A stretch of 64,000 nt of DNA from Octopus bimaculoides. Lineage: Eukaryota. Positions 46-61,339 of the stretch are shown piece by piece. The stretch's first letter is position 1. Each line of letters starts with the position of its first letter. The notes under the pieces are model-generated. The model did no database searches. It was given only the letters and a program-made list of their open reading frames with translations, and was not told the DNA's origin. The DNA lies in the NCBI RefSeq assembly GCF_001194135.2, contig NC_068983.1, positions 147,271,896 to 147,335,895 on the forward strand. The letters run 5' to 3'. The position numbers were made by a program, and so were the translations under genes.

Positions 46-152
46 GTAAAGTGGACACATGGAAAAAATGGTTAACGGTGGAACAAAGTGAAAGAATCGA
101 TGCAAGGATCCAATCAGAATTCACGGATCAAGGAATCATTTTTAATTTTTGA
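46..152 (+). CDS. Terminal coding exon of an upstream sulfotransferase-like paralog (copy 0; rest of gene lies before the window)
   Basis: tttacag acceptor at 44-45, phase 1. Reads (G)KVDTWKKWLTVEQSERIDARIQSEFTDQGIIFNF*. It is 107 nt, like exon 5 of copies A and B, and carries the KxxxTVxxxE SULT dimerisation motif. Confidence 0.85.
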
Positions 153-12086: not shown

Positions 12087-12463
12087 NNNNNNNNNNNNNN
12101 NNNNNNNNNNNNNNNNNNNNNNNNNNNNNNNNNNNNNNNNNNNNNNNNNNNNNNNNNNNNNNNNNNNNNNNNNNNNNNNNNNNNNNNNNNNNNNNNNNNN
12201 NNNNNNNNNNNNNNNNNNNNNNNNNNNNNNNNNNNNNNNNNNNNNNNNNNNNNNNNNNNNNNNNNNNNNNNNNNNNNNNNNNNNNNNNNNNNNNNNNNNN
12301 NNNNNNNNNNNNNNNNNNNNNNNNNNNNNNNNNNNNNNNNNNNNNNNNNNNNNNNNNNNNNNNNNNNNNNNNNNNNNNNNNNNNNNNNNNNNNNNNNNNN
12401 NNNNNNNNNNNNNNNNNNNNNNNNNNNNNNNNNNNNNNNNNNNNNNNNNNNNNNNNNNNNNNN

Positions 12464-13321: not shown

Positions 13322-13532
13322 ATGAGTAAAGAAATGAACCCTGAAGAAATAAAAAAGGAAATTGAAAGTAATTTTAAACAATACTTCGGCAAAGATGGAG
13401 AACCTTTATCAGTTTATCAATATAAAGGACACAATATTATGAAATTCGACATTGCAGTTTCAGCTTTATCCAAACTACATATGGTGAAAATCAGACCAGA
13501 TGATATTTTGATGTTTTCCTATCCTGCAGCCG
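13322..13532 (+). CDS. Sulfotransferase-like gene A, exon 1
   Basis: MSKEMNPEEIKKEIE...IRPDDILMFSYPAA(G). Matches the SULT N-terminal (R)xDD...YP PSB region. Donor G|gtcaga, phase 1. Confidence 0.85.
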
Positions 13533-14530
13533 GTCAGATTTTATTATATCGCTTATTGTTAGGCAAAATATTTTTACATTGTAGCCAGGGTATGATTGCA
13601 TGTCTCTGTATGACGTTCATACGTGTACTATTTGTTTGTGTTTGTGTAATTTATTTACATATTTCTATTCAACATACTCTATGTACCCTTCATGCACTTT
13701 GTTATCCTATATTTACTTAGTTTTGTAAAGATGAATATATTTCTCTATTTTTATTTATTCCCTTTTTATCTATTTCTTCCCTTGCGTGTGTGAGGATTTT
13801 TACGTGTCTGCGTGTACTTGCGTATGTATGTATATGGGTATAAATGATGTTTGTACATATGTTGAAACTTTTGACTTACAACTGTCTTGTGTAGCTGCTG
13901 GGATGCCCCTGAGTGTATGCGTGTGTATTCGAGTTCATGTGACTTATCGTTTTCGGCTTTATACCCTTCTCGGCTAGTTCTACTTTTTCAGATTAACCAT
14001 AATAATTATTGACTTCAATACCAACACCTTCGTTGCCAATACCAACACATACACCACCTCTGGCACTCACTTCTACTCATTTGTTTGTTATTACCATCAC
14101 GAACAACACACATACAGCCATCATCACGCTTCAACGTCAACACAGTCGACATCTGACTCGACCAACCCCCGACTCGAACGGCGGTAACTGTATCATTAGC
14201 CCCAACAGCTTTTTTCTCCCCATCTTCTTCACCATGTTCCACAAATTCCAAACGTATACAAGTTCAATTCTGTTACAAAATTGTACACAAAATTCAAATC
14301 TTTAGAATCCTTTTACAGTTTCTGCTTAGACGTAATCCCTACCTTAACTCAAAATTGTAATCCTAAGTGCTAACACGAAACCCAAACTTCAGATGCTGAC
14401 CTTCGGCAGAACAAGAAAGAGCGTAATATGAAAAAAGCGGGGTGGGTGGGAGAGAGGGGGAGGGGAGAGAGGAGAAGGGGAGAGATGTGCGTATCTATGT
14501 GTGTAACAATTTTAGAGTTCGGATTCTCGA

Positions 14531-14589
14531 GTTAGGGTTAGTTTTAGGGTTAGGGTTAGGGTTACGGTTACGGTTAACAGTCTAGTTAG
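14531..14589 (+). repeat. Short interstitial telomeric-type (TTAGGG)n tract with variants, abutting a gap
   Basis: gttagggttagttttagggttagggttagggttacggttacggtt. Confidence 0.85.
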
Positions 14590-15516
14590 NNNNNNNNNNN
14601 NNNNNNNNNNNNNNNNNNNNNNNNNNNNNNNNNNNNNNNNNNNNNNNNNNNNNNNNNNNNNNNNNNNNNNNNNNNNNNNNNNNNNNNNNNNNNNNNNNNN
14701 NNNNNNNNNNNNNNNNNNNNNNNNNNNNNNNNNNNNNNNNNNNNNNNNNNNNNNNNNNNNNNNNNNNNNNNNNNNNNNNNNNNNNNNNNNNNNNNNNNNN
14801 NNNNNNNNNNNNNNNNNNNNNNNNNNNNNNNNNNNNNNNNNNNNNNNNNNNNNNNNNNNNNNNNNNNNNNNNNNNNNNNNNNNNNNNNNNNNNNNNNNNN
14901 NNNNNNNNNNNNNNNNNNNNNNNNNNNNNNNNNNNNNNNNNNNNNNNNNNNNNNNNNNNNNNNNNNNNNNNNNNNNNNNNNNNNNNNNNNNNNNNNNNNN
15001 NNNNNNNNNNNNNNNNNNNNNNNNNNNNNNNNNNNNNNNNNNNNNNNNNNNNNNNNNNNNNNNNNNNNNNNNNNNNNNNNNNNNNNNNNNNNNNNNNNNN
15101 NNNNNNNNNNNNNNNNNNNNNNNNNNNNNNNNNNNNNNNNNNNNNNNNNNNNNNNNNNNNNNNNNNNNNNNNNNNNNNNNNNNNNNNNNNNNNNNNNNNN
15201 NNNNNNNNNNNNNNNNNNNNNNNNNNNNNNNNNNNNNNNNNNNNNNNNNNNNNNNNNNNNNNNNNNNNNNNNNNNNNNNNNNNNNNNNNNNNNNNNNNNN
15301 NNNNNNNNNNNNNNNNNNNNNNNNNNNNNNNNNNNNNNNNNNNNNNNNNNNNNNNNNNNNNNNNNNNNNNNNNNNNNNNNNNNNNNNNNNNNNNNNNNNN
15401 NNNNNNNNNNNNNNNNNNNNNNNNNNNNNNNNNNNNNNNNNNNNNNNNNNNNNNNNNNNNNNNNNNNNNNNNNNNNNNNNNNNNNNNNNNNNNNNNNNNN
15501 NNNNNNNNNNNNNNNN

Positions 15517-15581
<65 letters not shown>

Positions 15582-15828
15582 GCACGCGCACACTGTTTTC
15601 ATTAGTTATCGTCTGTCTGTTACGACTTGGCTTTGTAAACTGATTGAAAGCGCATATGTTCCAGAATGACAGTTTTATAAACGTTATCATCACACTGCCA
15701 TTCCATATTTGTCGCTCACACTACTCAGTTCTCTCCCTCCCTGATATCAGTCACTCTCCCTATATCACCTCATTTCTCTCACACTAATACTATTGCACCC
15801 TTCTCATTTTACCCAAAACTAACCCACC

Positions 15829-16176
15829 ATTGTTGTTGTTGTTGTTGTTGTTGGCACTCCGTCGCTTACGACATCAAGGGTTCCAGTTGATCCGATGAAC
15901 GAAACAACCTGCTCGTGAAATTAACGTGCAAGTGGCTGAGCACTCCACAGACACGTGTACCCTTAACGTAGTTCTCGGGGATATTCAGCGTGACACGATG
16001 TGAAAAGGATGACCCTTTGAATTACAGGCACAACAAAAACAGGAAGTAGGAGTGAGAGAAAGTTGTGGTAAAAGAGTACTGCAGGGTTCGCCACCATCCC
16101 CTGCCGGAGCCTCGCGGAGCTTTAGGTGTTTTCGCTCAATAAACACTCACAACGCCCGGTCTGAGAATCGAAACCA
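15829..16176 (-). mobile_element. tRNA-derived SINE family 1, head truncated
   Basis: Reverse complement of 37947-38330. (ACA)n tail. Confidence 0.85.
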
Positions 16177-16195
16177 TTTTAAAGATGAAGACTTT

Positions 16196-16462
16196 TATCT
16201 AGAGGCCACACCTTTCAATTGAGCAAACTCAAAGTTGCCATGTAAACTCCTCACCACATTTAACATCGTTGTGCAAATTTTCAGGTCAATCTAACCACAT
16301 TTACTAACTTTTGCCTGCACAACTGCGTGTGAGACAAAGTCCGCCCTTTTCAGACTNNNNNNNNNNTTTAACATCGTTGTGCAAATTTTCAGGTCAATCT
16401 AACCACATTTACTAACTTTTGCCTGCACAACTGCGTGTGAGACAAAGTCCGCCCTTTTCAGA
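16196..16462 (-). mobile_element. Helitron 5'-subterminal fragment, duplicated across a 10-N gap
   Basis: Same sequence as 18935-19125 and 33405-33555. Confidence 0.6.
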
Positions 16463-19139
16463 CTAACAGAGAAACCCATCCTTGCTCGGGATTAAAATGG
16501 CATAGTTTTTTTTATTGTTTTACTTGTTTCAGTATTATAACCCGATTTCTTTTGTATCTACTCGGGCCACATTTTAAAGATGAGGAATTCCAAACAAAAA
16601 AAAAAAAAACAACGAAAATTTTATTAAAAATTAGTAATGAAAAAAAGCATGCCAAATGTTTAAACAGTCTTTGAGACGTGATTGGAGAAACCTCACGGAT
16701 GCAGATGTGAAGAGCAAAGAATGACGGGAAAATGCTGGAAAAAAAAAACACAAAACACAAATCAGGTCTCTGCACAAAACTGAAACAGTATAATACGACT
16801 GCACTTACAATGCCTTGGAAAAAATATGGAGGTAGTTGGCTGTTGAAGAATTCAATAGGGTAGATGACGGAATCGTCTGTGCTTTTGTTGGTGTCAATTG
16901 ACTTGAATGAGACATCATCTCCTAGAATCTGATCAAGCAGGTGTTGATTCATTGCGTCAACGGTGACATTATGTGGTGCTAAAATAGCTCTCTCTTGCAG
17001 CCAGTTGTGATCAAGGAATCATGCTTCGAAGTCTGGGAAAACAGATGACACAAAGTTCTCAAATGGCAGACGGATGTGCTCTTCATCAATTCCAGGTGTA
17101 GCTCCATTACTAACTTCCTGTAAGAGTTTTGAGAAATCCACAGAGTCTGTATCACCATTCACATGCACTCTCATGTTAGTAGTCAGGTTTAGTTTCTGGA
17201 CATATTGCCATAGGTAGGATGACTTGATGCATTTATTAACATCGTCAGCTCTAGTGCCTCTAGTGATTACAGGAAGTGTCTGACGAAAATTGCCAGCCAT
17301 CACTACCGTTGCTCTACCCATTATGTGTTAATTTCGATGCAAGTCTTCGAGAGTTCGGTCTAAAGCCTCAAAGGTCACTTTGTAACTCATTGTAGCCTTA
17401 TCCCAAATGATTAGACAGCAATCACAAAGAAGTTTTCCTTTTGAGTTGCCATGATTTATTTTGCATGTAGGATTCTCCTTCTTTGCAAGGTCCATAGGCA
17501 ATTAGAATGCGGAGTGTGCCGTACGACCGCCATGTAACAGTGTTGCCGCAATACCACTTGAGGTAACCACTAAAGCAATCCGCCTGTCTTTCTGCAGCTT
17601 CGCGATGGTTTATTTACTGCAAAAATATTTTAAAATGCAGAGCATGAGGGTTTGTATGAAAGTTGAACTCAAATATGGAGAAATTTTAAAAAATTGAATT
17701 GATAAACTCGGCTTTCAACATTTGTCAGACGGAAAATAACAGTGGATGTCGGTAGAAAACGTGCCTGCAAATCACTACATGCGCTTTGGCTTTGATTGCT
17801 CTGGTTAGTAAGAGAGGTCGCCTGATTGGCAGAAAAAACAATAGACGACATAGATGGGATCTATAAGACGTGTCTGGGCATTTTATTCAGCATGCTAATG
17901 GAAAAACTATCTTTAACGTAGATATGAAGGCAAATTTGCCATCCAAGTTGATTTATAATGATAATAATAGAAGCTGTAAATGTAGAAGGTGACAGTGTAT
18001 TTACAGCAAAGTAAAGTTCTCATTGATGTGCAAGTTAAAAATTGCGTAGTATTAAAGTTTGTATATAATTTTAAATCACTAATGAAGAAATTAAAAAGAA
18101 ACTGAATTGATTAACTTGGCAACAAAATTTTTCAAGCAGAATTTAAGTTTTCAGCATTTAATAGAATGAAAATAAAGAAAGAAATCGGTAAAAAAACGAA
18201 CGTGTGCATGCGTCTCCCTTCTTTGCCATTTAAGGGCTCTATTTCTTTTGAGAGAATACACTGGGCATTTTCAGTTGGAAATATTGTATAACGATACTAT
18301 ATAAGCATTATAAAATTAGTTTATGTTAAATACTAAACAACTGTATGTAAAAGTATTTTTGGTTGAAAACCGAATAACTGAGAGGAAGAAGTCTTTTAAA
18401 TAAGGAGGCTCAATATAAAATTTATGCATTCATTGAGTGTTAAATGGTAATGTTAGAAAGAAAATGTTCTGAGATTATTAAGGTTTCTTGATTTTGAAAT
18501 GCTTTATAAAATAAAATTATTTTTAAAAAGGCACAATAAAAGGGCAGACATGTAAAATATAGCGCTAATATTGAAGAGAAAATAGTCTGTGATTTTTTAC
18601 GTATCATGAATTTGCAATTCTTTACAAAAACAAAATGCATCATTAAGCATTAAATCATCCAAGAGAAATCAACAGCAAAAATTGCAGTCACCAAGAGAAG
18701 ATTCAACTCAAATGAAAAGTGGCTAAATCTCAACGTCAGCTAAACTTACAGAGAGAGAGGCGGGGAGAGGAAGAGTGACAGGGAGATAGGGAAGACGGAG
18801 AGAGTAGAAGCTGTTAGATTCCGTTCTAGAGACAAAGTGAAGGAAAGGGAGGAAAGAAAGAGATTGAGGAAGAAAGGCTGTTGTGTATAGAAAGAGAGGA
18901 CGCAAACACCTGTCAAAATCCACAAACACTTGTCAAAGCCAAACCTTTCAATTGAGCAAACTCAAATTTGCCATGCATGGTCCTCAGTCTGTTCCTCATA
19001 GGTGTGCAAATTTTCAGCTTGTAATGTCTCTATTGCAACTATCAACCTTTTACAAGCTCAATCCGACCGCATTTACTAACACTTTTGCCTGCATAACTGT
19101 ATGAGACAACGTCCACTCTTTTTACAAATATATATTAGA
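16463..19139 (-). mobile_element. Internally deleted Helitron in intron 1 of SULT-A
   Basis: 5' end A|TCTAATATATA at 19139. The 3' end at about 16463-16492 resembles the clean Helitron end at 40002-40035 (CTAG degraded). Contains a helicase remnant. Confidence 0.6.
16840..17600 (-). pseudogene. Helitron PIF1-family helicase remnant
   Basis: IALVVTSSGIAATLLHGGRTAHSAF, LIIWDKATM, FEALDRTL, VVMAGNFRQTLPVI, LTTNMRV, YPIEFFNS. Contains stops and frameshifts. Confidence 0.85.
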
Positions 19140-19994
19140 TAAAATAAATTTCATCGGGTGGACCTGCAAAATGTTGTATGTGCTGTACAAGTACAGATAC
19201 TACGGTGATATATTTCCTCCTGTATATTTTGTATACCATTATAAGTTCACCACTCATCAAATACAATTTGTATTCCTGGTGGAATGTTATTTAGAATGAT
19301 CGTATTTTTGTCCTACCTTTATTGTACTTCCTCTCAAGAAAATGGATTTCGGTTTATTCTTAGTACCATAAAAAGTGCCTTCTGTAAGTCCATACCAAAA
19401 ATACTGTACTGGATGTTGTGTGATAAGATATATGCAGTTGTCTCTGCAGAACTGGTGCCCAATCAGTGACAGTTTTTCTGACAGTAAATTTAGTTCCAGC
19501 GACTGCATCCTTTCATAACGTTTCGTAAATGAAAATCATTATTTTGTAGAACTAATTTGATCTTACGTTTTACTATTGTACACACTGCAAGCGAGGTGTG
19601 GCTGAAGTTTGCTTCCCAACTGCATGGTTCCATACTGGGCATATTTGCTTATAATATACCAAAAGGTATTCACAACCCATGGGACATCCTAGAGTATACC
19701 AAACACACCTAGGGTGTTAAATACTCATAAGGGTTAAATTGTCTGTGTGCACAACCTGAATATTTTGCTGAATGTACTTCAGTACCCAGTAAATCTATTC
19801 AACTAAAGATGGTGCTTACAGGTTAATTCAGCCCAACCTGGTGTATATCATTTGAGCACCCGATTTTCTCCAGAATCCTTAATATTATATATATATCTGT
19901 TTATCAATTCGTTTTGCAAGATTCCTGATGTGAACTCGTGTGTTGAAACAGATATTGTTGTATTTCGGGATGATCATTTTATCTATTTTAAAGA

Positions 19995-20056
<62 letters not shown>

Positions 20057-20074
20057 TCATGTGTTGCGTATGGA

Positions 20075-20890
20075 TGAGGACAGCTGTGTGAAAGAGTGTC
20101 ACACCCTAGCAGTAGAGGGAGCCTGTGAAAGAAGTAGATCTAAGAAGACCTGAGATGAGATGGTAAAGCACAACCTTCGAACATTGGGCCTCACCGAAAC
20201 GATGACAAGTAACGGAGACCTTCGGAGATATGCTGTGCTTAAGAAGACCCGACAAGCCAGGTGAGACGGTAACCGTGGCCTATGCCAGCGCAGCAGCATA
20301 ACCAGCCCATTTAATAGTACCCTTCAATCATTGAGCAATAAACTGCGTTTGCGAAGACCTGTTGAAGCAAGTGAAGTCATTGTCATGGCCGTTGACAGTA
20401 CCGCCCAATTGGCACCCATGCTGTTGGCACATAAAAAGCACCATTCGAGCGTGACCGATGCCAGTGCCACCTGACTGGCTCCCATGCTGGTGACATGTAA
20501 AAAGCAGCATTCAATAGTAGCTGATGCCAGTGCTGCCTGACTGATTCCCGTGCCTGTGGCACGTAAAAATCACCATTCGAGCGTGGTCGTTGCCAGTGCC
20601 GCCTGACTGGCGCCCGTGCCGGTGGCATGTTACAAGCACCATTGAAGCGTGGCCGATGCCAGTACCACCTGACTGGCCCTCGTGCTGGTGGCATGTAAAA
20701 AGCACCCACTACACTCTCGGAGTGGTTGGCATTAGGAAGGGCATCCAGCTGTAGAGACTCTGCCAAATCAGATTGGAGCCTGGTGCAGCCTCCTGGCTCA
20801 CCAGCCCTCAGTTCAAACCGTCCAACCAATGCCATAATGGAAAGCAGACATTAAACAACAACGACAACGACGATGACGATGCTGATGAAA
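20075..20890 (+). mobile_element. RTE LINE 3' fragment (RT end, tandem-unit 3' UTR, GAT/GAC tail)
   Basis: Homologous to 9576-10430 in the opposite orientation. Confidence 0.8.
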
Positions 20891-20949
20891 TACTCCAACA
20901 CACATGCCTCTGCCTCTATTCGTTTTGATCGTTTCTCTTGGCATGTTTG

Positions 20950-21140
20950 AGTTAACACTAGTTTTTACACTATCGACTTTTGATACAGCCTTATTTAAAG
21001 GACAAGAGCCTGCATTTTTGCATGAGTAATTTAGATTTACTCGCTGGATGGGTTTACTGAAGATCATCACTTTTATATTAGGTCTGAAACTGTATCTTAT
21101 TTTCACAGAACGTCTCTTCAAAATTGTCCTATACATATGG
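20950..21140 (-). mobile_element. Penelope-like element C-terminal linker fragment
   Basis: VKIRYSFRPNIKVMI...NYSCKNAGSCPLN resembles the VKxSYSCxPNI...CNC...CPL block of PLE ORFs. Confidence 0.5.
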
Positions 21141-22095
21141 TATGGAGATATGTTTAAGTGGGATAAGCACTTTCACCTGATATTAGTATTAATAATTAGA
21201 GAGACTGAGGGACAAACACAATAATTTTTTGCTTCTAATAATTGTGGACAATGATCATGTGTTGCAAGACTGCATGAAATGTATTGTCTTTGAAAACAAT
21301 GTGTTGTAGTACTTCCATGTTTCTACTCCAAATTACCTTTTCAAGTCACTGCCAGCTCAACAAACAAATCTAGTGAAATCATGAGTTTAGGTGCTGTGTT
21401 GTTATTGTAATATGGCTTTTGTCAAATACACCGGAGTCTTCCAGCTATAAACATTATATAGAAGTCTGGATGACAGCTTCTCCTAATTGATATGCCTGCA
21501 CTATGTTTCTTAGCCTGCTTTTGAAAGGTAAAAAGTAAAGACAGTTTGTGCTGACATTGAGGCACTTGTGTTGCTGGTGTAATGCATCAGAATTCATATA
21601 CATTTATGTTTGAGTGGTCGGGTATGTGTACGTGCTTGCATGTGTGCATGTGCGTGTGTTCTGTGTGTGTGTGTGTGTGTGAGTGTGTGTGCTCCAGGAC
21701 TCTTTTATGTGCTCATGTTGCGCACGGAAGTATATAGACAAATAAATCAATTCCATGATTTCATTTCTGACAAGTGTAATTTAGACACTGAACATTAAAT
21801 CACGTTTCGCAATAACATAGGATTTCTTTTTCAGCATTCACAGCCTTATTACTCACTTAATTTTGCAAACCTTTTAATTTTACAAATTCATTTAATTCTA
21901 TAATTGGAGAAATCTCGAACGCACAACAATTATTCTTTAACTATTGAAATATTAGATTTAATTTCCGTAAACCAATATCTCTGATCACCAAATAGAAGCA
22001 ACTATTCCTTACTACTGTCTTAGGTCGTCAGAGAGATTCATATTTATCCATTTATACATTTGTTTTAATAACTAGGATTGTATATCACATTTCAG

Positions 22096-22413
22096 GATCG
22101 CATTGGATGTTTGAAATCGTTAATATGATATTGAAAGGAAGCACTGAAAGGGTTTCCTTGCTAAAAGAAGACTTACTGTTAGATTGGTCACCATTTGAAA
22201 AGCTAGATTCCATTGAATCCCCTCGACTCTTGAACACGCACCTTCCTCCTGAACTTCTGCCTCAAGAATTGCTAAAGGATCATAAAATGATATTCCTCAA
22301 CCGCAACCCGAAAGCTATGCTGGTGTCGTTCTACAGACATATATTAGACGTTAATTTGTTGAACTACAAAGGAGATTTTCTAAGCTATTTTGACCTTTGG
22401 ATGCAAGGAGAAG
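22096..22413 (+). CDS. Sulfotransferase-like gene A, exon 2
   Basis: ttcag|GA TCG CAT TGG. Reads (G)SHWMFEIV...SPRLLNTHLP...RNPKAMLVSFY...WMQGE. Donor G|gtaagc; 318 nt. Confidence 0.93.
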
Positions 22414-23538: not shown

Positions 23539-23636
23539 TACCTTGGGATGATTACTTTAAATATGTTCAGGAAATGTATGCTCTATGTAAAGATAACCCA
23601 AATGCACTTATCATAACTTATGAAGAAATCAAAGCG
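23539..23636 (+). CDS. Sulfotransferase-like gene A, exon 3
   Basis: ttttccag|. Reads (V)PWDDYFKYVQEMYALCKDNPNALIITYEEIKA. Donor |gtaatt; 98 nt. Not in the ORF track. Confidence 0.9.
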
Positions 23637-23939: not shown

Positions 23940-24117
23940 GATATACCCAAAGCAGTGTCACGTGTTGCTAAATTCTTGGAGAAAACAATTCCTGACCAAC
24001 TTACAAAGGATATTGCTGATATGTGTTCATTTGATAAAATGAAATCCGAGAAAAAACTTGTTAGTTCGTATTTACCCAAAGATTCACTCAAAGATGGCGG
24101 TACTGTCTTCCATTCTG
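23940..24117 (+). CDS. Sulfotransferase-like gene A, exon 4
   Basis: caacag|. Reads DIPKAVSRVAKFLEK...DMCSFDKMK...GTVFHS. Donor G|gtaatt; 178 nt. Confidence 0.92.
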
Positions 24118-49770: not shown

Positions 49771-49877
49771 GAAAAGTTTCCACTTGGAAGGAATGGTTAA
49801 CTGTGGACCAAAGTGAACGACTGGATGCACGGATACAGTCTGAACTCATTGATCAAGAAATCATTTTGAATATTTAA
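49771..49877 (+). CDS. Sulfotransferase-like gene B, exon 5 (terminal)
   Basis: tttacag|. Reads (G)KVSTWKEWLTVDQSERLDARIQSELIDQEIILNI*. The spliced CDS is 900 nt (299 aa plus stop). AATAAA at 49942-49947. Confidence 0.92.
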
Positions 49878-53139: not shown

Positions 53140-53994
53140 CGAGGGGTGTATGAAAAGTTTTGAGTCTCAAAAAAACAAAACATGGTACAAAACTTCTGAA
53201 GATTTATTTTTCAACATAGTCCTCCTTGATGGCTGAAGACTTTCTCCAGCGGTGCTGAAGCGCCATTATCCCGGCATAGAACTCATTTGTTTGAGACTCC
53301 GAGAAACTTCCTAGAGCATCTATGACGTCATTGTCACTGGCAAAATGGCAACCAGCCAGGGCTTTTATCATTTTGGGGAATAGATGAAAGTCAGAGGGGG
53401 CTAAGTCTGGCGAATAAGGCGGATGGGAAACAAGTTTGTATCCACAATCACGAATTGTTGCCATGGCGAGGGACCCACCTTGCAGAAACCTTTGAGAACC
53501 CAAGCTCTTTTGTCACAATCTTGTCTGCTCTTTCAACTGAGATGCCTACTGTCTTGGCTATCTGACGACATGATATTTGGCGCTTGCATTATCATGCCAA
53601 GAGCAAGGTCAAGGTTGTCCTTGGTGGTTGCAGTTAGAGGTCTCCCTGGTCTGTGATCATCTTCCACACTCTCCCTGCCACGCTTGAATTCATTTACCCA
53701 GCGTTTGACTGTTGCATATGAAGGAGCATTGTCTGTTAAGGTTCTCACCATATCTTCATGGATTTCTGATGGAGTCATGTCTTTCAAATGAAGGTACTTT
53801 ATGACAGCACGATACTCAGTTTTCTCCATTTTCCCTGTACCCTCGACAAATCTGCAACAAACAAAATAAAAATATCATAATCATGAAAATGAGCAAGAAT
53901 ACTATGAAAAGACTACTTACCAGAAAAAATTGTTTCAGCTATCTAACAGCCCCGTTTATAGGTTTGGCTCAAAACGTTTCATACATCACTCATG
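53140..53994 (-). mobile_element. Internally deleted mariner with both TIRs, TA target
   Basis: TA|CGAGGGGTGTATGAAAAGTTTTGAG ... CTCAAAACGTTTCATACATCACTCATG|TA. Protein pieces YRAVIKYL...TVKRWVNEFKRGRESVEDDHRPGRP and HPPYSPDLAPSDFHLFP; the central catalytic region is missing. Confidence 0.9.
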
Positions 53995-57530: not shown

Positions 57531-58793
57531 TTATTTATTTTTTACAGATTTCTTTTTACTGAATACATACTTGTTGATAAGAATATAAAGAATAAAGATT
57601 TGAATAAAGAAAAAGATGACACTAGCAAGACAAATATATATAAAAGTGTTGCTACCTTCAAATTCCAAGAAATAAGCAGGTAGAAGCCATATGCCTTGTC
57701 CAAGAAACCAAACTAGAATTAAAATCAATCCATGAACTACAGTCAGTTGCAGAGAAGGCAGAAGTAAGGGAAGGAGACAGAGGTACCAGAGAAAATATTG
57801 GGATGTGCATACTTTGTTAAACATCACAAAAATTACAGTTAAAAGGAACCAGCAGAAGGGCAAGTCAGCAAAGTATACAAGTGTTATGGCTGAAATTAGA
57901 ATGATCTGTGGTAGAAAAGTAATGAGGCCAATCAGTGTTGATTGACTCAAATCTGCTGTAAGATAGAGAAGGTAGAAAAACAGAGAAAAGTTATGCCGAG
58001 TATCTTTACGGCTTATGTGATAGAGATATGCTTCCTGTATAAATGGCCACTCATATGCAAAGTAAAAGATACTAGTCAGTGAAGCTAAAGTTAAGATAGA
58101 AACTAAAGCAAATACAATCTGATCAGAGTTGGGTAAAATAAGTCTTTTTATCTTTTGTAGCTTCTTGTTAGGTTTTGTAAATGATTCAGATGCAAGGTTT
58201 AAGTAAATAGAAGGAGCATAAATGATTGGATATATTTTGGTGTGTATAGCAATTCCATACAACACAGCTGCAAAAAATAAATGTCTTTTAAGGCATGTTA
58301 GTAAGCTAAAAAGAACTAGGAAAGTTATGATAGATTCAGCATTACCCCGGGTACATATAGTTATAGAGAGTGGATTATACAACCAAAACATTGAACACAA
58401 TGTAGACAGTCTTCTTGATTGATGTTTTAGTTGAACTATCTTGAAAATTGTAAAAGCAGTAAGTAAGTCAAATACTACAAAAACAAATTTCCCAAAATGA
58501 AATGAAATTAAAATATTTGGTGTCAAAAAATATGCCAACAAAGGTGTATAGCGGTATGTGTGTCTCTTATAAGGACTCAATCCCTCCACAACATGCTTTG
58601 CGGCATCAGTAAACACACTGTAATCAATATCTGTATATTTGACATCGAAATTTAAGTCTTGCCATATACCATAACCAATTAACACAAACCGAATCAAGCA
58701 TCCAATGGTTAGATGCCATTTAATGTGTAATAAACTGGTTTTTGCTGCTGACACTTTGATGAGATTAAATAGGTATTGCATAACGGTCTTCAT
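57531..58793 (-). CDS. PIGM: GPI mannosyltransferase I (PIG-M), single coding exon, 420 aa
   Basis: VKYTDIDY (DxD), SPYKRHTYRYTPLLAY, WLYNPL...TRGNAES, HTKIYP, RKDTRHNFS, FNKVCTSQYFLWY. Multi-pass hydrophobic profile. C-terminal basic tail (KKKSVKNK) compatible with ER retention. Confidence 0.97.
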   Translation of the reverse strand: MKTVMQYLFNLIKVSAAKTSLLHIKWHLTIGCLIRFVLIGYGIWQDLNFDVKYTDIDYSVFTDAAKHVVEGLSPYKRHTYRYTPLLAYFLTPNILISFHFGKFVFVVFDLLTAFTIFKIVQLKHQSRRLSTLCSMFWLYNPLSITICTRGNAESIITFLVLFSLLTCLKRHLFFAAVLYGIAIHTKIYPIIYAPSIYLNLASESFTKPNKKLQKIKRLILPNSDQIVFALVSILTLASLTSIFYFAYEWPFIQEAYLYHISRKDTRHNFSLFFYLLYLTADLSQSTLIGLITFLPQIILISAITLVYFADLPFCWFLLTVIFVMFNKVCTSQYFLWYLCLLPLLLPSLQLTVVHGLILILVWFLGQGIWLLPAYFLEFEGSNTFIYICLASVIFFFIQIFILYILINKYVFSKKKSVKNK

Positions 58794-61339
58794 TTCATTT
58801 CTTGCTATATATTTAAATACAAAACTGGATCTTCTTCTGCAGTTACATTTAGAGCTGAGTTCAAAATGAGGACTTTCTATATTTTCTCTCTCCCTTTCAA
58901 AAGAAACTTGTAGCGTACCATTGCATCTCTAGGTATTGAAACCACAACAAATGTTTAAATATTTTCCTAAAATAAGATAAAAGAAGAATTACAATAACTC
59001 AAATTGAAAATGTGTCACAATAACCATTAATATTTACTTATTATAACATCCAGGAATTCCCTCACGAGATTTGATAGCTAATTCTTTAATAGTTGGAAGC
59101 TATCAACAATTTATATATCTTACTATTGTTAATGAGGCAAAATAATAATGTGGATACATTAATTACAGAAAAAATATGTAAATCTTTTCAAGTTTGAGAA
59201 TATACAGGTTTCATATTTTGCATAAAAAAATAAATTTAAAAAAATGTTAAAATCCAAACATGAATAAGTATCACATGACAACGTTTTGGAAATGATCTGT
59301 TGCAGTAACAATTATTTATGATCTCGTCTTTCATAATCTATACTCTGTTTTAACTGGTTTAGTCTTCAGCTAATTTATTCCTATACATATGAACATTTCC
59401 CTATACTGGGTCTGAATTCAGAAAGATTAAGATTTCAACATCCCATGAAATTATAGCATACTCATTAAGATCAAGAAAACACTTGATAAATGTTGAGTTG
59501 AAAGCCAGTCAAGGAATATATACCTATATATTAGAATAAAGTACTTGAAGGTAATTGGAGAAGACTGGGAGGATCAAAATGTAGTGTAATACATAAATAA
59601 AAATGAAAATGTGATTAATTTTGAAGAAAATTCAAGTCATCACAAAACTGACTGCTTTGTTATAATCTTTACTGAGATGTTTGACAATCATCGCCACCAC
59701 TACCATAACCATCATTATAATTTTCCTCTGCCTTATGAGCTGGTATGGGTTGAGTGAGCCATTGAAACTGGAGCCAGTGTTCTAGATGGCTTGAAGGACT
59801 ACATCTCACACTTATGATTTTCAGTATAAATTCTATGGCTGGATACCCTTCATCACGACCATTTTACAGTGTACTGGGAACATTTTATCATGGCACCAGC
59901 ACCAGAGAGGTTGTCATATCGTTAAGACTAAAGGGTCCTTATGACCCTATACTGTCTCCACTTGTTTGCCATCATTTTAGATATCGTACAGGTATGATTT
60001 ATTAGAATGTTTAGCTGAAGACTTTAGGAACACCTCTTATGTATATCAACATGACTGTTTCATGCTGGTATAGGTTGAATGGAATGTTATAGTCCAAACC
60101 AGATCTTATTTGGAGTTATAGTCTTGGATAATTTGGGAGAACACATTTCATTCATATGTTTATATTTTGGTATAGCTTCTATAGCCGCATACCCATCTAA
60201 CACCAACCACTTTATAGGAGGCCTCAAATGTGCTTTATCACAGTATCAGACACATTGTCATCTCTTCTGCAAGACAGGACTAAAGATTCCTCTGAATCCT
60301 ACATTGTTTCTATTCATTCACCAACTACTTTACAGAGTGTACAGTGTACATTATATCAGGGCATCAGTACTAGTGAGGTTGTCTTGAATCTTGTAATCTT
60401 CATTGCTCTATATTGTTTCCATTTGTCTGGAGCAATGTAGTTAATAGTGTGTAAAAGAGATTGCAGGACATGAAAGGAAGCAGAATGATTAGGGTATGCA
60501 TGGAAAAAGGAAATAGGGGAGACAGTATAGAAGCAATGAAAGAGACATTAAGAGCTGAAGATAACAGAGAGAGAGAGAGAGAAAGCAAGGGACAGATAGT
60601 CGTAAAAGGGACAGGTGTAGAGTGTTAGAGGTCAATAATGAATGACCTGGAGAAAAGTAATTTGTTGTCAGTTGTATAGAAGAGTATAATGTTAGTTATT
60701 AAGATAGAAAGCCAATGGTTAGTGTTACGGCTATGAGGGAGTTAAAGATGGAGGAGGAAAAGTATTGAAATGATGTAATCTTACATTAATCAAATATCAT
60801 AATCGGGAAATGACACTAATGGAAGCTACTTATTTGCTAGAAGAAAGAATGGGGCGCCTGTAATAGATATGAATAGATAAATGTGTGTGTGTGTAAGGGA
60901 TATATGTACAGGGAGACAGTTAGTCATGCAAGCAGCTATAACTAAGAATTTCAAAGGTGTGAAATTGTATTGAATCAATCAGATGTCATTTGTTTGCCAC
61001 CCAAAGCCTACCAGTCTACGGTGATGATAATTGTTTGTTTCTAATTAAGGCACAAGGCCAGAATTTTAAGATTTCATTAATTTCAGTACTTGATTGGTAC
61101 TATATTTTATTGACTCTGAAAGCATGAAAGGCAACATTGACCTCAGCAGGATCTGAACCCAGAACCAGAACTGAAAGAAATACTGCAAGACATTTTGTAA
61201 TGATTTTGCCAGTTCACAGAATTAATGATGATGATGATGATTATTATCATCATCAATTATTGTTAGGGCCTTGGGGACAATATCAAAAACTACCCCATGA
61301 CCAATAGCCTGCAAGGTTTGATAGAGAAGGAAGCCAAAG

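Follow-up and report, generated by a model that had tools for sequence, protein, structure and literature searches.

The window analysed here is a stretch of 64 kb from the chromosome-scale contig C3 of Octopus bimaculoides (positions 147,271,896-147,335,895), with 37% G+C and eleven runs of N. It carries two genes of the cytosolic sulfotransferase (SULT) superfamily, called A and B below (Table 1). Both have complete five-exon open reading frames (ORFs), every intron is flanked by GT..AG, and exons 2-5 have the same lengths in the two genes (318/98/178/107 nt). The spliced model of A is 100% identical to the RefSeq protein XP_014790788 (P0001, 303 aa), and that of B is 100% identical to XP_014790789 (P0021, 299 aa). 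What sets these genes apart is their 5'-phosphosulfate-binding (5'-PSB) loop, from which the catalytic Lys is missing. The loop motif is split by the phase-1 intron 1 and, as a sequence-only reading of this DNA had pointed out, it can be seen only after splicing. In A, the junction TAT CCT GCA GCC G (up to 13532)^GA TCG CAT TGG (from 22096) is translated as YPAAGSHW, and in B, the junction TAT CCT ACT GCT G (up to 35246)^GT ACA CAT TGG (from 39245) is translated as YPTAGTHW. Direct reading of the codons agrees with that earlier observation in full: Lys is absent from both paralogues, with Ala in its place in A and Thr in B.

The membership of A and B in the SULT superfamily is established by homology. 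The Pfam profile PF00685 (Sulfotransfer_1) matches A and B at E-values of 5.6e-50 and 9.8e-53 (170.6 and 179.6 bits against a cut-off of 22) and is spanned from position 1 to position 251 of 255. Human SULT1E1 in the PDB is matched at E 7.5e-36. The AlphaFold2 model of A (predicted local distance difference test, pLDDT, 90.8; predicted template modelling score, pTM, 0.90) contains a strand at residues 62-66, a loop, and a helix at residues 72-84, which together make up the PSB element, and Foldseek aligns the model with SULT1E1, SULT1B1, and SULT1A1 at template modelling (TM) scores of 0.78-0.82. In the phmmer alignment, SYPAAGSHW of A stands opposite TYPKSGTTW of human SULT1E1 with zero gaps. 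Because this HMMER alignment is ungapped, Ala69 of A and Thr65 of B can be equated with K47 of the human protein and K48 of the mouse protein.

Not all of the sequence hallmarks of the family are equally well preserved. The loop that is canonically PK[SAT]GT[TH]W is present, with its Lys/Arg replaced, and the canonical RKGxxGDWK reads HSGKVDTWK in A and RSGKVSTWK in B, so that Gly, Trp, and the final Lys are retained. The catalytic His (H107 in human SULT1E1) is found as His119 in A and His115 in B. The residues of the 3'-phosphate-binding (3'-PB) site, R129 and S137, are found as Arg140 and Ser148 in A, and the KxxxTVxxxE dimerization motif (K275, T279, V280, E284) is invariant across the clade described below. 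Since the PSB Lys and RKGxxGDW depart from the canonical state and the other sequence hallmarks are kept, A and B are better described as a Lys-less SULT variant than as “estrogen sulfotransferase”. In what follows, lost and kept sites are numbered according to human SULT1E1, and Arg151, Lys270, Asp181, and His73 are numbered according to A.

The loss of this Lys is rare. A was searched exhaustively against 1.84 billion representative proteins, together with three word-indexed searches, and all hits were aligned to A using phmmer, which yielded 286 informative SULT domains, most of them lophotrochozoan. A tabulation of the Lys position, as proposed in the earlier reading, gives K in 234 domains and R in 15 (K/R in 249 of 286), and the 37 exceptions are nearly all cephalopod (31). 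The non-cephalopod exceptions are the three-domain protein P0057, one domain of P0126, and the shortened models P0133 and P0298. P0057 (889 aa, from a transcript contig) consists of three tandem SULT domains with the loops PMSGHDW, PNSGHEC, and PMSGHEW, each with Q or E at the position of the catalytic His; the protein is an independent Lys-less SULT repeat protein, probably dead as an enzyme. The lophotrochozoan norm is PK[AS]GTHW ... LN[ST]H ... YRKGxxGDWK. The outgroup comprised 222 rows of lophotrochozoan and other SULTs, all of them K/R-bearing (211 K, 11 R). His occupies the T51 position in 169 of these rows, and Asn occupies the K105/K106 position in 143. At these two positions of the catalytic site, the invertebrate consensus is not that of the vertebrate textbook motif. 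The GSHW/GTHW half of the loop had also been taken as deviant, but the loop His is the normal lophotrochozoan state, and this claim had to be given up. On comparison of the sequences, the missing Lys is the sole anomaly of the loop, with its S/T-H-W part being ordinary.

The absence of Lys is shared by a whole group of cephalopod proteins. All 26 full-length cephalopod relatives recovered, which come from O. bimaculoides, O. sinensis, O. vulgaris, Argonauta hians, and three transcriptomes, are without Lys/Arg at the PSB position and carry G, A, T, S, or Y instead. The A-type group (14 full-length sequences) has G or A in place of the Lys and then [AT]G[SA]HW; the B-type group comprises five sequences with P[TS][ASC]GTHW; the P0035 group is one Argonauta gene with PYSGTHW; and the P0036-type group (“SULT1B1-like”), with P[AS]SGTHW, is represented in Argonauta, O. 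sinensis (for example, XP_029658400), and O. vulgaris and by P0187 and P0188. The last two are transcript-derived and 67–71% identical to the octopod P0036-type proteins; given this identity and their position in the tree, they presumably belong to more distant coleoids.

An IQ-TREE tree that included 24 Lys-less rows was calculated after removal of the PSB, RKG, 151, and 181 columns. All 24 rows fall on one branch (ultrafast bootstrap, UFBoot, 98; Shimodaira–Hasegawa-like approximate likelihood-ratio test, SH-aLRT, 91), and a single change is needed in 99% of the bootstrap trees. A quick tree, also without the motif columns, places all non-K/R rows on one branch (SH-aLRT 91). The topology within the clade is (P0036-type,(P0035,(B,A))). 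Because all Lys-less rows share a branch, one ancient loss of Lys suffices. The tree places a single loss of the PSB Lys in the ancestor of the clade, after which the site drifted among small residues. The loss is older than the split between Octopus and Argonauta and older than the split from the P0187/P0188 lineage. The sequence-only reading had explained Ala in one copy and Thr in the other by relaxed constraint at this site. The part of this claim that stands is that the site is no longer held to one residue, as the range of residues among the relatives demonstrates; the confinement to two paralogues does not stand, since the loss is common to all members of a cephalopod-specific clade.

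The remainder of the pocket combines strong conservation with a set of defined changes. G49, W52, H107, R129, F228, M231, G258, W263, and the KTVE motif are invariant in 26/26 sequences, S137 varies between S and T, T50 among S, T, and A, and Y192 between Y and F, and the rest of the PSB loop is conserved as P-x-x-G-[STA]-H-W. Eight of the 11 other cofactor or catalytic positions are invariant, compared with 35 of 240 columns overall (Fisher p = 1.2e-5). K257 is replaced by S/T/N/D (RKG becomes R[STD]G) and G261-D262 is replaced by x-T in P0035, B, and A. D133 is replaced by A/S in B and A (RNPKD reads RNPKA in genes A and B), the K196 equivalent is S in P0035 and B, and R256 is H in the A group. 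The P0036-type proteins keep the full YRKGQVGDWK and differ from active-type SULTs essentially only at the Lys. Residues were also gained. Arg151, which lies one helical turn past Ser148 (S137), is found in 20/20 A, B, and P0035 sequences, with N/H/Y outside; Lys270 (“SGK”) is found in 18/20 of the same sequences; and Asp181 (S170 of the YGSW motif) is shared by 24/26 Lys-less rows and seldom occurs elsewhere. Because Arg151 and Lys270 were gained, the positive charge near the phosphates appears to have been relocated and not merely lost. The losses and gains follow the tree stepwise: K47 went first, the remodelling of RKG and GDW and the gain of Arg151 and Lys270 took place in the ancestor of the P0035, B, and A groups, and His replaced Arg256 later, in the A group. 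The variability within the A group peaks at positions 151-160, 251-260, 41-50, and 101-110, of which 151-160 and 251-260 are the classical SULT substrate loops.

The genes are maintained by selection. The ratio of nonsynonymous to synonymous divergence (dN/dS, omega) was determined by the Nei–Gojobori method, with one-sided p-values, on coding sequences extracted from genomic loci or transcript contigs. Between O. bimaculoides and O. sinensis, it amounts to 0.32 for B (dS 0.12, p = 2e-4) and 0.49 for A (dS 0.19, p = 2e-3). For A and its neighbouring paralogue P0004, it is 0.48 (dS 0.23, p = 9e-4), and for the P0036-type pair P0187 and P0188, it is as low as 0.087 (dS 0.86, p = 2e-36). As dN is significantly below dS, A, B, and the P0036-type genes are not decaying pseudogenes. 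A and B are intact, under purifying selection, and selectively maintained.

The Lys-less loop can also be followed beyond this assembly. No coding frame of A or B spans an N run. The orthologous O. sinensis loci (L042 and L041) are adjacent and have the same order and strand as in O. bimaculoides, and their first introns of 2,379 and 2,551 nt contain zero N, and the junction codons are identical to those of A and B. Intronless contigs from RNA-type assemblies carry the Lys-less loop for three family members (L045, L035, and L036-39); L045 has a 903-nt ORF in a 1,213-nt contig and reads SYPGAGSHW. Since these transcript contigs are intronless, the spliced Lys-less loop exists in the mature mRNA of family members. 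The same codons in gap-free loci and the same loop in transcripts bear out the earlier view that the missing Lys is not a sequencing error.

That reading would have been overturned by transcripts in which another exon 1 restores PK(S/A)G, and several sources of a Lys were considered. The alternative first exons of B in RefSeq (Table 1) splice to the usual exon-2 acceptor and read ...R/S/C-THW. In the resulting isoforms, strand beta-1 and all of YPxxG, half of the PSB loop, are missing, and the Lys is restored in none of them; they were rejected as its source. At least the exon at 33300-33530 is repeat-derived, as indicated by diverged copies at 18916-19098 and 16207-16308. A tblastn search with A, B, and Lys-bearing relatives as queries turned up no other stretch resembling a SULT exon 1 where intron 1 of either gene is readable, which disposes of a hidden alternative exon 1 outside the unreadable N runs; an exon concealed within those runs is unlikely because the O. 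sinensis introns are gap-free. A-to-I editing was rejected as well: according to the genetic code, it never yields Lys or Arg from GCA or ACT, for which Ala is the only possible outcome.

The family is numerous in O. bimaculoides. A Lys-less-type exon 2 occurs at no fewer than 14 loci, of which 12 are A/B-type, located in three C3 clusters at 123, 147.2, and 157.1 Mb and on two unplaced contigs. The array to which A and B belong (C3:147.228-147.322 Mb) contains at least five same-strand Lys-less SULT-like genes in tandem. The family grew by tandem duplication on one octopus chromosome. Not every copy is preserved: the A-type exon 2 of L017 (C3:157162100-157162640) has an in-frame stop (AMAWR*RS), and thus at least one family member is decaying. 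A search of the 20 kb upstream of exon 2 did not reveal exon 1 of the P0036-type gene in O. bimaculoides, and the motif of this type was read from O. sinensis, O. vulgaris, Argonauta, and transcripts. Six Lys/Arg-bearing SULTs are retained in the genome, namely PKAG^TTW on C19, PRSG^TTW on C24, and four [FM]K[AS]G^CHW genes on C8 and C28, which excludes the loss of all canonical SULTs in octopus.

Other features of the window are listed in Table 1 together with the exons. Several of the N runs inspected (e.g., 12087-12463, 14590-15516, 38772-38982, and 44120-44958) are bordered by (CA)n or (TA)n microsatellites, as judged from six-frame translations, and such dinucleotide repeats probably explain why the assembly breaks there. 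Transposon remnants lie in or beside the genes. Intron 1 of A contains a PIF1-like helicase fragment (E 1e-18), intron 3 of B shows weak similarity to a reverse transcriptase (E 0.002), and a further remnant is a Mos1-type HTH_48 fragment (E 9e-10). Downstream of the SULT array, an uninterrupted frame of 465 aa matches PIG-M glycosylphosphatidylinositol (GPI) mannosyltransferase (PF05007, E 8.8e-83) and is apparently an intronless housekeeping gene.

Table 1. Features of the 64-kb window; positions count from its first nucleotide.
Feature	Position	Strand	Remarks
Last exon of upstream paralogue P0004 (XP_014790787)	46-152	+	FPAAGSHW; same tandem array
Gene A exon 1	13322-13532	+	Met1 to first base of Gly71; ends YPAA+G
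Gene A Lys-equivalent codon	13526-13528	+	GCA, Ala69; position of human SULT1E1 K47 / mouse K48
Gene A intron 1	13533-22095	+	phase-1
Gene A exon 2	22096-22413	+	(G)SHW at 22096-22106
Gene A His119	22239-22241	+	catalytic
Gene A Arg140	22302-22304	+	
Gene A Ser148	22326-22328	+	
Gene A Arg151	22335-22337	+	clade-specific
Gene A exon 3	23539-23636	+	includes Asp181 (S170, YGSW motif of human SULT1E1)
Gene A exon 4	23940-24117	+	ends FHS+G; HSG in place of RKG
Gene A exon 5 with stop	29989-30095	+	GKVDTWKKWLTVEQSE; GDW replaced by DTW, KTVE dimer motif retained
Gene B exon 1	35048-35246	+	ends YPTA+G
Gene B Lys-equivalent codon	35240-35242	+	ACT, Thr65
Gene B exon 2	39245-39562	+	(G)THW at 39245-39255; catalytic His115 at 39388-39390
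Gene B exon 3	42410-42507	+	
Gene B exon 4	47600-47777	+	ends YRS+G; RSG in place of RKG
Gene B exon 5 with stop	49771-49877	+	GKVSTWKEWLTVDQSE
Gene B alternative first exon	33300-33530	+	RefSeq isoform X1
Gene B alternative first exon	36561-36650	+	RefSeq isoform X3
Gene B alternative first exon	33926-33976	+	older RefSeq isoform X3
Assembly gap, 927 N	14590-15516		wholly within intron 1 of A, non-coding
Assembly gap, 10 N	16357-16366		within intron 1 of A
Assembly gap	38772-38982		within intron 1 of B
Transposon remnant	17019-17327	-	
Transposon remnant	46445-47206	+	
Transposon remnant	53533-53874	-	
PIG-M match	57531-58928	-	

There are common properties of the octopus proteins and the vertebrate SULT1 enzymes (human SULT1E1, SULT1B1, and SULT1A1 and mouse estrogen sulfotransferase). 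Both have the same full-length Sulfotransfer_1 domain and fold (TM ~0.8), the catalytic His, the Arg and Ser of the 3'-PB site, the loop Gly and Trp, KTVE, and the adenine-stacking Tyr and Phe. Unlike the vertebrate enzymes, A and B have Ala or Thr at K47/K48 and the remodelled forms of RKGxxGDWK given above; they also have Asn at K105/K106 and His at T51, both of which are normal for lophotrochozoans. Their nearest non-cephalopod relatives are the lophotrochozoan PK[AS]GTHW SULTs (Babylonia, Argopecten, Ostrea, Patella, and Lingula) at 30–40% identity. These resemble the octopus proteins in the GTHW, LN[ST]H, and YRKG context and in their exon-derived architecture but keep the Lys, RKG, and GDW and have N/H/Y at the Arg151 site. 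A Lys-bearing enzyme of this kind from a scallop, Chlamys farreri EST, has been shown to be active (PMC13603450).

The accepted SULT mechanism uses His, Lys, and Ser. Mouse SULT2A8 (PDB 7EOV), with the loop PKSGTHW, is instructive in this respect: its loop His, at 4.7 Å from the sulfonate, takes part in catalysis, and its K44A mutant has 10–30% activity at pH 5.5 and none at pH 7.5 (PMC8134075). In the octopus loops, this position is occupied by His73 in A and His69 in B. What mouse SULT2A8 has lost is the conventional His and not the Lys, whereas in the octopus proteins it is the other way round. In P0057, the Lys is gone as it is in the octopus clade, but the catalytic His has been lost too, whereas the octopus clade keeps the His and most of the pocket. 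SULT4A1 has the SULT fold without demonstrated activity and keeps the Lys. Neither Lys-less cephalopod SULTs nor SULT pseudoenzymes were found described in the literature, and no earlier description of the present clade was found.

The interpretation that we favour, and to which we would give an even chance, is that the clade consists of maintained nucleotide-binding proteins in which sulfuryl transfer has been weakened or re-tuned. The clade proteins most likely still bind 3'-phosphoadenosine 5'-phosphosulfate (PAPS) or the product nucleotide PAP. The invariant loop His73, and/or Arg151 and Lys270, may partly stand in for the charge normally provided by the Lys, with His73 of A sitting at the position that is catalytic in mouse SULT2A8. 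A number of points weigh against this interpretation. The Lys site is K/R in nearly all informative domains (249/286). The K44A mutant of mouse SULT2A8 is inactive at pH 7.5 and loses stabilization by PAP (PMC8134075). More phosphate contacts have been lost, namely K257 in A and B, R256 in A, and the K196 equivalent in B. The omega of A and B (0.3–0.5) is high for a housekeeping enzyme, and the expression of A and B themselves is presumed from their RefSeq models. Finally, that Arg151 or His73 would reach the sulfate is a presumption. A bolder reading is that these proteins carry out Lys-independent sulfuryl transfer, or use an altered donor or reaction, with His73, Arg151, Lys270, and Asp181 replacing the Lys; this appears unlikely.

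The same losses can be read as the signs of a non-catalytic SULT fold. Transfer would then have ceased, and the proteins would have been retained for binding small molecules or nucleotides, for buffering, or for regulation; they would resemble the S- and Omega-crystallins, which are enzyme-derived, largely inactive cephalopod proteins. This is the strongest of the rival explanations, although a somewhat unlikely one. A near-universal Lys is gone, the equivalents of K257, R256 or K196, D262, and D133 are eroded further in A and B, omega is raised (0.32–0.49), expansion in tandem was rapid, and the K44A mutant of mouse SULT2A8 is unresponsive to PAP (PMC8134075). On the other hand, the catalytic His is kept in 26/26 sequences, and the equivalents of R129, S137, G49, and W52 are retained, whereas the Lys-less P0057 has lost its His too. 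The P0036-type proteins deviate essentially only at the Lys and yet have an omega of 0.087, and basic residues were moved (Arg151 and Lys270), not simply lost. The coordinated, fixed changes near the phosphate region (Asp181 in 24/26, Arg151, Lys270, and GDW to xTW) would also suit a changed chemistry, such as another sulfuryl donor, PAPS hydrolysis, or sulfation-elimination as in retinol dehydratase, which is among the structural neighbours. We regard this as improbable. Retinol dehydratase is only a distant neighbour and retains the Lys, nothing points to a particular donor, and the residues for adenine and the 3'-phosphate are unchanged.

The remaining two explanations fare worse. A recent relaxation of constraint at the Lys site of just these two paralogues would agree with the Ala/Thr difference between A and B and with the variability of the site among relatives. 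It is nevertheless very improbable, as the loss is clade-wide, predates the Octopus–Argonauta split, and is accompanied by fixed, non-random changes elsewhere. That the loop is an artefact or a product of decay, arising from misassembly at the N gaps, a wrong splice model, sequencing error, or neutral young pseudogenes, is barely credible. The gaps in intron 1 of both genes and the stop in L017 speak for it; against it are complete ORFs with canonical splice sites that equal the RefSeq models, gap-free O. sinensis loci with the same codons, dN significantly below dS, a loop shared by the four named species and by transcript contigs, the inability of A-to-I editing to yield Lys/Arg, and the lack of any Lys codon among the orthologues.

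The PSB-loop Lys is, in the accepted view, one of three essential catalytic residues, and the clade is a natural test of whether it is indispensable. It provides a graded series that runs from the single-copy P0036-type, with the loss of Lys essentially alone, to the A- and B-types with their differently remodelled 3'-phosphate loops. There are also consequences for annotation. Genes of the clade are now named “sulfotransferase 1E1/1A1/1C4”, and a study of the octopus optic gland lists a “sulfotransferase 1C2”, which may or may not belong to the clade, among steroid enzymes purely by name. A steroid-sulfating role inferred from such gene names is unsafe until activity is shown. Were Lys-independent transfer, or an altered donor or reaction, to prove true, these proteins would be the SULT counterpart of the “with-no-lysine” kinases, and the octopod expansion would serve a lineage-specific small-molecule pathway, for example, one of steroid- or bile-alcohol-like signals.

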